A stretch of DNA of 53,164 nt. It comes from Macrostomum lignano. Its lineage: Eukaryota. The stretch is taken from contig NIVC01000579.1 of NCBI GenBank assembly GCA_002269645.1, forward strand, positions 1 to 53,164. The letters are read 5' to 3'. Position 1 is the first letter of the stretch. Each line of letters begins with the position of its first letter. The notes under the pieces were generated by a model. It had not been told where the DNA came from. It searched no databases and saw only the letters and a list, made by a program, of their open reading frames with translations. The translations under genes were made by a program, and so were the position numbers. This document shows positions 32,001 to 48,690 of this stretch, piece by piece.

Positions 32001-35000
32001 CTGCCCGAGTTTCTGGTTGTCTGCTGCTGGCGCACCGTCAAGGAGGCCTCCCTTCTGGTGGCCGAGCTCAGCGAGCGGCACATTCCTGGCGACTGCGGCG
32101 CCGAAGGAAGTCAGGAGTTCATTGAGCGGATGGTAGGCAGGCTCATCGATTGATCTTGGAGGTTAGGGCGAGATCTCGAATCTCGCGAGTCAGGGCGAGA
32201 TCTCAAATCTTGTCAGTTAGGGCGAGATCTCAAATCTTGTCAGTTAGGGCGAGATCTCAAATCTTGTCAGTTAGGGCGAGATCTCAAATCTTGTCAGTTA
32301 GGGCGAGATCTCAAATCTCAAATTCTGAAATCTCTGTCCAACGGTTTCTTAGTTACAAAAATGTTTTAAAGAATCTATCCTTCACTGCACCACAACCTTC
32401 CTTAGGTGCGGACAATTCACGCCTTCTACAAGGAGTTGTTATTCGACTCGCGTCACCGCGGCGCATTCGAACTCGCCTACGAAGGCTTCGGCCGTTTTTG
32501 CGCCTCCGTCTGGCGCTGCCCGGCCGCGCCTCTCGGCTGCCTGCCCGCCGGCTGGCTGGCCGAACTCCTGTCCGACTTAGCCGGGCCGCCTGTAGATAGG
32601 CTACGCCTCTGCCTGACCCGGCGCTCGGCTGGCCTGCCTTATTACATTTTGGTGAGCTAGTTGTCGGGATCTATGTTTTTCGACTGTTAAAATTTGCGCG
32701 TGTACTTTTAAACAAGTTTGCGTGCACTATTACTCTAGCTAAACCATTGTCGTAGTCTACGCACTTGTGTAGAACATGCGCACTTGTGTAATGGTATATC
32801 CGCAGTTGTGTAATAGTACATGCGCACTTGCATAAAAGTACATATATTGCACCCCGAACCCGTTCAGGGCATTGTGGCCAGCGAACCGGCCCTGGACAAA
32901 AGCGTCACCCCGGCCGCTCTAAGCAAAGCACTCGATGCCCTTTTAAGCTTGGCAGAAACTCGGTCTGGCGAAGACGATGAATTCGTGGTACGGTTTTTAT
33001 TGTTTTTTAGTCTCGGTGGGGCAGAGCAGCTCAACGGTTAGAGTACCCAAGTACCCGAGTACCCGAGTACCCGAGTACCTGAGAACTAATCATTCGTTCC
33101 CATATCTCCCGCCCAGGTGCACGTGTACAACACGCTGCCGGCTCTGTTTGCCGACTCGCGCGTCGGCCCCGCCACCGGCCAGTGGGTGGCGCCGGCGCTC
33201 TGCCGCGCCCTCGACGGATTCGGCGCCAGGAATTGGAGCGTGAGCGGCTGGAGCTGTCTGTTTTGTGTGTCTCTTATTTCTGCGGTGGCGGCCTGTTGCT
33301 TAGGATAGAAGGCTCCAGGTGTCTTGTCTAATCTTTCTTCATTTCTTTAACGCCCGCATCTCTGAGCTGCAACGTGGCCGGGGTTCGGTTCCCCGAGAGC
33401 AATGCTAGATTAGTTAGTTCGCAGTGGCCGGGGGGGGGGCGCCTTGGCTGTTGGCCCTCAAGTCTGTGCTCAGGTTAGTTCTCGCGCCAGGTGTAATTAA
33501 AGTTCGTCTAGATTTCTGGATCTTTCTGCTTTCCTAATTACCTGTGTAATCGGTCATGTACACGGATATGGATCTATGTTGTATGCAAGCCTTTCTAATT
33601 GGTGTTCAAGGCATTGTTCCACTGCGTCTTTTTTATCTGTACTATTTTCTTTAGCCCTTTGTCTAACACAATTCAAACGTATTTTACTGTGACCTCCTGT
33701 ATCCTCTTTCTCTCTCCCCTTCATCTGCAATTCTTTGTTTGTCGGTCTTGCACACACACACACTCTCTCCGTCTCTCTTCCCCTCTCCCTTCCCCTCTCT
33801 TTAATCCCTCCCTTCCCCTCTCCTTAATCCCTCCCTTCCCCTCTCCCTTCATCTCTGCTTCCCTTCTGTCTCTGTTCTTGTGTTTAAAGAAAGAATGTTT
33901 GCCTCAATAATTAAAAGTTATTTGTTAATCGAAATATTTTAATGCCCCACATTATCCTAAATGAGAATCCTGCTCTTAACGCAGGTGAAAGCAACGGCAT
34001 TCAAGACTTTCTGATGCCATACAGTCTCCTTAATCCTTTAATCCCTTCCTTCGCTATTCCGCGTCTCTTCTTACCTGGTTTGCTTGCAAAAGAGCAAAAC
34101 TGCTACATTTTTCTCTATTTTTATCATTCGAAGAAGCATCATGCTTGCCCGAATTTTGTGTTATTAAAATTTTTCCTATTGAAGTCCGAAACCGCCACCC
34201 CCCTCCCCCTGTGCAGATCCGGAACTCCTGCAGCCGCCTATTCAGCTCGCTGTTTGTGCGAATATTTGGCGTCACCCGTTGCCGCGAGGAGACCAGCAAG
34301 AAGAATGTGTGCGTGCCGCTCTGAATGCCTGGCATTGCTATCGTATTTCCAGGCTGATTTATTAGCTTTTCTGTAATAAAACCTCACTCTCTCTCTTTCG
34401 GTTAGAATATTTTCACGGATAGGTTTCGGCTTTTTCCACTTTTTTTTCTGAAGTCACTTCGAGCTCTGATAGTAATATTTATCATAATCATTCTGTTGAC
34501 TAACTGTCGTTGTTGCGCGGAATCTCCTCTACTTTACCCCAGTGAAAACGATACCGTGACAAGAATCATTAAAAAGTCATTGCAAACAGCTCACTACTCT
34601 AGTGACTCTGGGACCATTCTTGTGACTTTTTAACGACTCAAACGCCCAAGAGTCGTTTCAAAGTCTCACACAATAAAACGCTTCAAAGTGACTCTTAGGC
34701 GACTCTTTAAAGACTTTTGGAGACTTGCACACCGTGGCATCTCGTCGTTTTAGAGTCGTCTGGAGTCACTTCTTTCCTATTGCAAGTATTGCTCTAGCTG
34801 TTCAAAAATCGCTCTACCTGTTTAAAAATTCCTATAGCTTTCTAGGAATCTCTCTAGCTTTCTAAGAATCGCTCTAGCTTTCTAAAAATCGCTCTAGCTT
34901 TCTAAGAATCGCTCTAGCTGTAAGAATTACTCTAGCTTTCTAAGAATCGCTCTAGCTGTAAGAATCGCTCTAGCTTTCTAAGAATCGCTCTAGCTTTCTA

Positions 35001-48690: not shown

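Follow-up and report, generated by a model that had tools for sequence, protein, structure and literature searches.

The window analysed here is the whole of contig NIVC01000579.1 (53,164 bp) of the Macrostomum lignano assembly Mlig_3_7 (GCA_002269645.1). Its forward strand carries part of a THADA/Trm732 gene, one intron of which is occupied almost entirely by a tandem repeat. The deposited protein PAA80475.1 (1,153 aa, partial) can be placed exactly on the window in 24 exons, separated by introns which are all of the GT-AG type; the gene is partial here, with exons 25-29 lying beyond the contig end. The principal features are as follows.

20049-48690, + strand: THADA/Trm732 gene (BOX15_Mlig014096g3, PAA80475.1), exons 1-24, placed by exact protein mapping and Pfam
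34217-34308, + strand: exon 22, 92 nt, ending in ...TSKKN and the GT of a split codon, from protein mapping
34309-48356, + strand: intron 22, 14,048 nt, GT...AG, phase 2 (codon split after its second base), from protein mapping
34309-34790, + strand: unique 5' stretch that opens intron 22, starting at the donor GTGCGT, from comparison of intron flanks
34791-48265, + strand: tandem array of about 680 units, arranged as head+(L S)(L S L')(L S L')+tail, with degenerate edge units, from TRF and unit splitting
48266-48356, + strand: unique 3' stretch that closes intron 22, comprising the pyrimidine tract and the acceptor (ccttttttag), 100% identical across copies
48357-48449, + strand: exon 23, 93 nt, its translation opening with the split-codon V and forming the start of TPR_Trm732_C, from protein mapping and Pfam
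48565-48690, + strand: exon 24, 126 nt, the final THADA exon on the window contig, from protein mapping

Assignment of the gene follows from its domains. A spliced draft of the exons flanking intron 22 matches Pfam DUF2428 (PF10350, THADA/TRM732; E = 2.4e-46, 158.6 bits against a cutoff of 27), directly followed by TPR_Trm732_C (PF25151; E = 1.9e-20). The latter begins at the first residue past the intron-22 junction region, and the two domains are contiguous after splicing. The combination of DUF2428 with a C-terminal TPR region places the predicted product in the THADA/Trm732 family. Going by the family name and the UniRef name, it would be the partner of Trm7/FTSJ1 in 2'-O-methylation at tRNA position 32. 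Compared with protein databases, the spliced C-terminal draft matched four distant THADA proteins only and no M. lignano entry; the M. lignano copies discussed below were retrieved by means of a chimaeric THADA+GPCR query and a cluster listing. None of the papers in the collection searched mentions THADA together with Macrostomum. The neighbour of THADA in the window is a COQ7 exon at 18097-18732, which matches a Macrostomum lignano protein at 100% identity.

Exon 22 ends ...AAGAAGAATGT/GTGCGT at 34308 and the exon 23 side reads TTTTTTAG/TCTG at 48357. The first-pass annotation had placed the break in the reading frame and its resumption in phase at exactly these positions, and both are borne out by the exact mapping of PAA80475.1 and by gap-free colinearity with a tapeworm orthologue. 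In the GenBank coding sequences, PAA80475.1 and PAA65893.1 (the second copy, 1,739 aa) both read ...TSKKNVLSTSVFF... over the intron-22 junction. The GenBank annotation was built from a genome-guided StringTie/TACO transcriptome, derived from RNA-seq, and a BLAT-mapped de novo transcriptome (PMC5730564). Since the deposited coding sequences derive from this RNA-guided annotation, the junction rests on RNA data at one remove. The splice sites themselves are unexceptional: with a matrix built from 28 introns of THADA itself, the donor reaches 6.0 bits and the acceptor 5.4, which places the two inside the range of the other splice sites of the gene. Intron 22 has the sequence hallmarks of a canonical GT-AG, U2-type spliceosomal intron, and taking it out gives back a frame colinear with homologues. 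That the two flanking exons belong to a single gene had also been proposed in the first-pass annotation, and on this the two coding sequences, the RNA-guided annotation, the tapeworm alignment and the tapeworm intron position agree.

The array takes up 13,475 of the 14,048 nt of intron 22 (95.9%), close to the 96% estimated initially. It begins 482 nt past the donor and ends 91 nt ahead of the acceptor. TRF reports one array with a period of 20, 683 copies and 85% matches; when the array is split at the CTCTAGC core, 584 units measure 20 bp and 93 measure 18 bp. The consensus of the 20-bp unit is GCTCTAGCTTTCTAAGAATC and the commonest 18-bp unit is GCTCTAGCTGTAAGAATT. Allowing up to 3 mismatches, the 20-bp consensus has 585 matches where 0.02 would be expected; every one of them is on the + strand and within the array. 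The sense strand is rich in T and C, and a palindrome of the form TTCN3GAA, TTCTAAGAA, is present in 584 units. Across the M. lignano sequence searched, about 180 kb, the 20-mer is confined to intron 22 of THADA.

Several other readings of the array were considered and set aside. Coding capacity is contradicted by the lack of any stop-free stretch of 60 aa or longer on either strand between 34630 and 48226. A structure-based RNA role was rejected, as 300 nt of the array fold less stably than 198 of 200 shuffled sequences (z = +2.19). An Rfam search over the whole window returned no family, and hence no sign of a hosted snoRNA or miRNA. A transposon origin was rejected on the grounds that the unique flanks of the intron recur nowhere else in the loci compared and contain no long internal repeats. 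The motifs AATAAA and ATTAAA do not occur anywhere across the 13.5-kb array. In the unique stretch between donor and array, for which no other copies were found within the M. lignano loci compared, an in-frame TGA at 34321-34323 is followed by AATAAA at 34375 and 34672 (67 and 364 nt in).

Minisatellites, or VNTRs, are built of units of about 10-100 bp repeated head to tail, forming arrays about 0.5-30 kb long at a single locus. The array in intron 22, with its head-to-tail units of 20 and 18 bp, variable copy number and lengths of 2.5, 6.65 and 13.5 kb in different copies, belongs to this class. It also displays the structural trait of satellites in the strict sense, namely higher-order structure with a homogenised interior and degenerate edges. 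Adjacent units are 81% identical. Periodicity at 138 and 158 bp is weak, the units forming irregular groups of around 138-158 bp. At a larger scale, blocks 1.4-3.4 kb long recur at offsets of 2,720, 4,554 and 7,274 bp with 99.4-99.8% identity. The block pairs, all on the + strand, are as follows.

39090-42461 and 43644-47015, + strand: largest internal duplication (span 39090-47015), offset 4,554, 99.8% identical
37782-39175 and 42356-43749, + strand: near-identical block pair, offset 4,574
36370-38426 and 43644-45700, + strand: near-identical block pair, offset 7,274
35062-36455 and 42356-43749, + strand: near-identical block pair, offset 7,294

The locus is present in other contigs of the same assembly. 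M. lignano DV1 has three subgenomes, termed S, L1 and L2 (PMC10733133), and the array was compared in the following four contigs.

NIVC01000579.1 (the window): array of 13.5 kb, 683 copies; intron 22 of 14,048 nt
NIVC01000580.1: array of 6.65 kb, 338 copies; intron 22 of 7,223 nt
NIVC01001608.1: array of 2.5 kb, 127 copies; intron 22 of 3,069 nt
NIVC01002479.1: array of at least 2.3 kb, the contig starting inside the array

The counts of 127, 338 and 683 copies come from three contigs in the assembly of one inbred line and are partly subject to assembly error. NIVC01001608.1 carries a full-length THADA (1,739 aa, 29 exons) with the same intron-22 boundaries as the window, and in NIVC01000580.1 both the boundaries and the array flanks are as in the window. 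NIVC01002479.1 matches NIVC01000580.1 on the 3' side with 0 mismatches and represents the same haplovariant. The final 91 nt of intron 22 are identical across all copies, while the first 482 nt are 94.5% identical between the window and NIVC01001608.1. This conservation of the array flanks points to a single origin of the array at this site, predating the divergence of the subgenomes, with a five-fold change in length since. Of the 1,153 codons compared between the window and NIVC01001608.1, 7 differ synonymously and 5 non-synonymously, and both frames are intact. The deposited THADA model of NIVC01000580.1 ends in another frame within exon 20, apparently through an assembly indel; owing to this frame shift its annotation is uninformative on the intron-22 junction.

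The difference in length between copies lies in the interior of the array. Head and tail units are common to the copies and it is the number of interior blocks that differs: the unit-type string is head+(L S)(L S L')(L S L')+tail in the window against head+L S L'+tail in NIVC01000580.1, and the shorter array of NIVC01001608.1 is organised differently from both. The excess length of the window array consists of kb-scale internal duplications. Such a pattern is as expected from unequal exchange, although assembler looping within the repeat could give the same result.

The presence of the repeat in three independent contigs makes it secure that the intron is filled by a multi-kb array of 20-bp units. 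The length of 13.5 kb is provisional, coming as it does from one contig of 2017 assembled from PacBio reads by Canu. It is possible, though we would put it at clearly less than even, that the array is real and its 13.5-kb length an artefact of Canu, arising by looping or by the joining of haplovariants, with a true intron of about 7 kb, as in NIVC01000580.1, or shorter. The window array amounts to that of NIVC01000580.1 with extra copies of its kb-scale blocks, and the 99.4-99.8% identity of the duplicated blocks falls within assembly noise. The window has 0 mismatches to NIVC01001608.1 over 20050-32150 and 0 mismatches to NIVC01000580.1 over 27050-34780, that is, for the 7.7 kb before the array, yet its 3' flank is unlike that of every other copy. 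Identity to two copies on the 5' side combined with a distinct 3' flank marks the window contig as a mosaic of haplovariants, whether biological or chimaeric. Mlig_3_7 was produced with Canu 1.4 from PacBio data of 2015, and its REAPR error-free bases amount to 64%; 36% of the M. lignano assembly length has been reported as chimaeric between subgenomes (PMC10733133). Both figures suit an artefact, as does the breaking of NIVC01002479.1 within the array. On the other hand, real arrays show exactly such a pattern through unequal exchange of kb-scale blocks, and the tail of the window array bears unit variants of its own. The three distinct 3' flanks match the expectation for three subgenomes, and other intronic arrays of THADA also vary several-fold between copies, a 56-mer being present in 13.5 copies in one and 50.5 in another. 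Anchoring the NIVC01000580.1 array 5' and 3' on that of the window gave alignments that are mostly 99.8-100% identical in both cases; at such near-identity, these alignments do not separate true duplication from a mis-join.

Intron 22 itself is older than its contents. In the tapeworm Dibothriocephalus latus, THADA reads ...ESKKNRMSSSVFF... across the junction without a gap, and the M. lignano junction peptide aligns gap-free to D. latus ESKKNRMSSSVFFAKFPGM. An intron interrupts the D. latus gene at the same codon and likewise in phase 2, preceded by an exon also of 92 nt and beginning with the same donor, GTGCGT. A search for tandem repeats in this orthologous intron (1,751 nt) found none. 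The array thus came to fill an ancestral flatworm intron in a lineage-specific manner. The THADA protein of Helobdella was unusable as a further test of intron position, as it ends near the junction.

Nor does intron 22 stand apart from the rest of the gene. Private, mutually unrelated tandem arrays, with units from 4 to 101 bp, are found in 15 of the 23 THADA introns in the window, and TRF covers 46% of intron sequence when intron 22 is excluded and 0% of exon sequence. These intronic arrays recur in NIVC01001608.1 at other copy numbers, the 56-mer being the example already given. The 22 introns of the window THADA other than intron 22 measure 71-1,440 nt, in keeping with the range of 50-1,500 nt given in the first-pass annotation; the full-length copy in NIVC01001608.1 extends that range, having two further introns of 3,317 and 6,091 nt. 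Across the genome of M. lignano, 15% of the sequence is simple or tandem repeat and the mean intron length is 1.1-1.4 kb (PMC5730564). Repeats in introns are a habit of the whole genome, and intron 22 stands at its upper extreme; it is not an isolated oddity.

Taken together, these data are best explained by a locus-specific, very large intronic minisatellite of VNTR type, lying in an ancient phase-2 intron of THADA, from which it is spliced out, and passively tolerated; we consider this the probable reading. It draws on the observed anatomy and position of the array, the mapping of the exons, the orthologous intron, the length differences between copies and the intact frames. To these it would add transcription through the window copy, a mechanism of growth, neutrality and a true length of 13.5 kb. 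The 20-bp unit would have been born once within the intron, at the site now 482 nt past the donor and 91 nt ahead of the acceptor. The array may then have grown through replication slippage and unequal exchange, from single units to irregular higher-order groups and on to blocks of 2.7-4.6 kb, until the arrays of the three subgenome copies stood at about 2.5, 6.65 and 13.5 kb. It would be transcribed within the pre-mRNA and excised with the intron at ordinary GT...AG sites. Most likely it has no sequence-specific function and represents a tolerated extreme in a genome whose introns mostly carry arrays.

How far the window copy itself is expressed depends on evidence shared between copies. Exons 22 and 23 are identical between the 14-kb and 7.2-kb copies and have 2 SNPs each relative to the 3.1-kb copy, and because of this near-identity the RNA evidence is not copy-specific. 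The SNPs lie at positions 17 (G/C) and 48 (A/T) of exon 22 and at positions 52 and 79 (G/A) of exon 23; in exon 24 the window has G at position 25, against A in NIVC01000580.1 and NIVC01002479.1, and A at position 10, against G in NIVC01001608.1. Transcription through the window's own 13.5-kb array, judged from RNA-guided annotation common to the copies, is presumed. Clean splicing is not guaranteed, as the array is rich in decoys: 93 GTAAGA/GTGAGA sites, supplied by the 18-bp variants, score 4.6-5.4 bits against 6.0 for the authentic donor, and 345 AG sites score as high as the range of authentic acceptors. The 20-bp consensus itself contains no GT. In gene models of the older ML2 assembly, the junction is crossed only in the short-intron haplotype, while the other two run past the donor (...KKNVCVPL*). 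These read-through models were most likely caused by broken contigs, although mis-processing that depends on length would fit them as well.

Two further explanations bear on expression and function. The window copy might be poorly expressed or silent, owing to decoy sites, intronic polyadenylation or repeat-induced chromatin, with the short-intron copy supplying THADA. The numerous decoy donors and acceptors would allow this, as would the AATAAA motifs downstream of the in-frame stop early in the intron, and the ML2 models show splicing only in the NIVC01001608.1-type haplotype, with read-through at the donor in two haplotypes. A precedent is offered by a human intronic VNTR in ABCA7, where expression loss and exon skipping scale with length (PMC5954066), and polyploid redundancy could permit the loss of window-copy expression. 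We nevertheless regard this as unlikely, since the open reading frame of the window copy is intact through all 24 exons, its splice sites are the same as in the other copies, the 91 nt ahead of the acceptor are 100% conserved, and the ML2 read-through is more simply accounted for by contigs breaking in the array. Scarcely credible is the suggestion that the array functions by its sequence, be it as a regulatory platform, a small-RNA source, a transcription-delay timer or a substrate for recursive splicing via the GTAAGA/AG sites. One might cite in its favour the uniform orientation of the units relative to transcription, the palindromic TTCTAAGAA in 584 units, the retention of the array in all copies and the 13.5 kb free of AATAAA and ATTAAA. 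Single orientation and missing poly(A) motifs are, however, trivial consequences of amplifying one unit. The five-fold variation in length among copies, the freedom of units to diverge (neighbours being 81% identical) and the repeat-free orthologous intron of D. latus all speak against function, as does the lack of RNA structure and of any Rfam match. Furthermore, unrelated arrays fill most of the other introns, so that no unit-specific role is needed.

Among described systems, the closest match is the VNTR in intron 18 of human ABCA7, which has a 25-bp unit and alleles of 298-10,678 bp, and in which reduced expression and exon skipping go with greater length (De Roeck et al. 2018, PMC5954066). 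In both cases a short complex unit (25 versus 20 bp) repeated head to tail fills most of one intron of a conserved gene; the size ranges are comparable (298-10,678 bp among ABCA7 alleles, 2.5-13.5 kb among M. lignano copies), and both arrays would be excised by ordinary splicing. The ABCA7 array starts at the donor GT, whereas that of M. lignano lies 482 nt past the donor. ABCA7 lengths are population alleles, while those in M. lignano belong to the subgenome copies of a neopolyploid. Length is tied to expression in ABCA7; in M. lignano such an effect would be hypothetical.

The first-pass annotation had likened intron 22 to the satellite-filled giant introns of Drosophila Y-linked fertility genes. 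The comparison holds insofar as repeats lie within an intron; it is otherwise loose, given the scale, which is kb and not Mb, the complexity of the 20-mer and the presence of arrays in nearly every larger intron of the M. lignano gene. The genes kl-2, kl-3 and kl-5 have gigantic introns filled with satellite (Fingerhut et al. 2019, PMC6508621). The two systems are alike in that repeats make up nearly the whole intron of a functional protein-coding gene and must be traversed by the polymerase. The kl introns reach hundreds of kb to Mb and have simple units of 5-7 bp, as against 3-14 kb for the copies of THADA intron 22 and a complex 20-mer. The kl genes are Y-linked, expressed in spermatocytes only and served by a dedicated expression programme, while THADA is an ordinary gene of a hermaphrodite and its intron 22 one of many repeat-bearing introns. 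With at most 14,048 nt and a 20-bp unit, intron 22 lies outside Drosophila-type intron gigantism in both size and unit length. Short euchromatic or intronic arrays of satellites such as Tribolium TCAST1 and Drosophila 1.688 (PMC5844308, PMC7642928) resemble the M. lignano case in being tandem repeats in or beside genes, within gene-rich DNA. They are dispersed copies of abundant genome-wide families, whereas the THADA 20-mer occurs in intron 22 only (in about 180 kb compared).

The array is a new example of a known phenomenon and no new kind of genetic element. Its interest lies in providing a measure of how large a tandem array can be tolerated in an intron of an essential, conserved gene. 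A natural length series is available within one animal, in which the same gene, with the same splice sites, has arrays of 2.5, 6.65 and 13.5 kb, and this series could be used to gauge the cost of intronic repeats in transcription and splicing. The arrays also illustrate why the M. lignano genome is difficult to assemble, as contigs break or turn mosaic inside them, and caution is called for with gene models in this species, which may be cut off at repeat-filled introns. A bolder proposal, which we think quite improbable, is that the five-fold differences in array length between subgenome copies may set the yield of full-length mRNA through decoy splicing, intronic polyadenylation or slower transcription, or else that M. 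lignano is unusual in ignoring splice look-alikes. If the proposal were true, runaway intronic minisatellites would drive unequal expression of duplicated genes in a neopolyploid.

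Tandem repetition is common in the THADA introns of this contig. Fifteen of the 23 introns within window 20049-48690 carry a private tandem array, each different from the others, with units ranging from 4 to 101 bp. Even when intron 22 is set aside, tandem repeats cover 46% of THADA intron sequence in the window, as against 0% of the exons. The copy numbers of these intronic arrays are unequal between subgenome copies, as seen on comparing window 20049-48690 with positions 3001-35978 of L004 (NIVC01001608.1). Features lying outside the THADA exons are as follows.

Features of the window neighbouring or nested within THADA
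3334-6983, plus strand: two long GC-rich open frames, the first matching WDR75 beta-propeller domains (1.3e-25)
8158-14123: NPRL2 gene, with a reverse-transcriptase fragment in an intron
10020-11339, minus strand: the reverse-transcriptase fragment in the NPRL2 intron (RVT_1, 1.7e-26)
11354-13101: 13-bp array of 133 copies, directly adjoining the reverse-transcriptase fragment at NPRL2
51514-52754 (about 26460-27700 in L004), plus strand: rhodopsin-type GPCR gene inside THADA intron 24, on the same strand as THADA

The two open frames at 3334-6983 form a distinct upstream gene, in which repeat-filled introns are few or absent. THADA intron 24, which hosts the GPCR gene, is 6,091 nt long in L004. 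In P0125, an older UniProt protein model, the GPCR is fused to the THADA C-terminus. Relative to this model the GPCR reading frame in the window is shifted near 52,37x; the shift is either genuine or the product of a 1-nt indel in the assembly.

The window contig, when aligned to the other assembled copies, is a mosaic of haplovariants (20050-34780 and 48266-51400). Over 20050-32150 it matches L004 without a single mismatch, and over 27050-34780 it does so with L003 (NIVC01000580.1), yet it has 30 mismatches to the latter in 23800-24950. The 3' flank (48266-51400) is distinct from both. The mosaic results either from recombination or gene conversion between subgenomes, or else from chimeric assembly.

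Reading through the intron-22 donor (window 34309-34700) yields the ending ...KKNVCVPL, with a stop codon at 34321-34323, and AATAAA motifs occur within the intron at 34375 and 34672. Among the UniProt models derived from the ML2 assembly, two have exactly this ending and stop. It could represent a truncated isoform produced by intronic polyadenylation, or simply the product of broken contigs. A further contig, NIVC01002479.1 (positions 1-2492), begins within the 20-bp array, and its annotated protein, P0131, has its start ATG in the final 50 nt of intron 22; the intron-22 repeat accounts for the truncation of this gene model. The 20-bp unit of the array (window 34791-48265) also contains a TTCN3GAA palindrome, TTCTAAGAA, found in 584 units. 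STAT factors bind palindromes of this type, though the resemblance is probably coincidental.

Over window 17329-20149, COQ7 (BOX15_Mlig014096g2) and THADA (BOX15_Mlig014096g3) share a transcriptional-unit prefix, and the THADA start codon ATG has an AG acceptor (tttcag) 8 nt before it. This suggests a shared polycistronic precursor that would be separated into its mRNAs by spliced-leader trans-splicing, a process described for many units in the M. lignano genome paper (PMC5730564).
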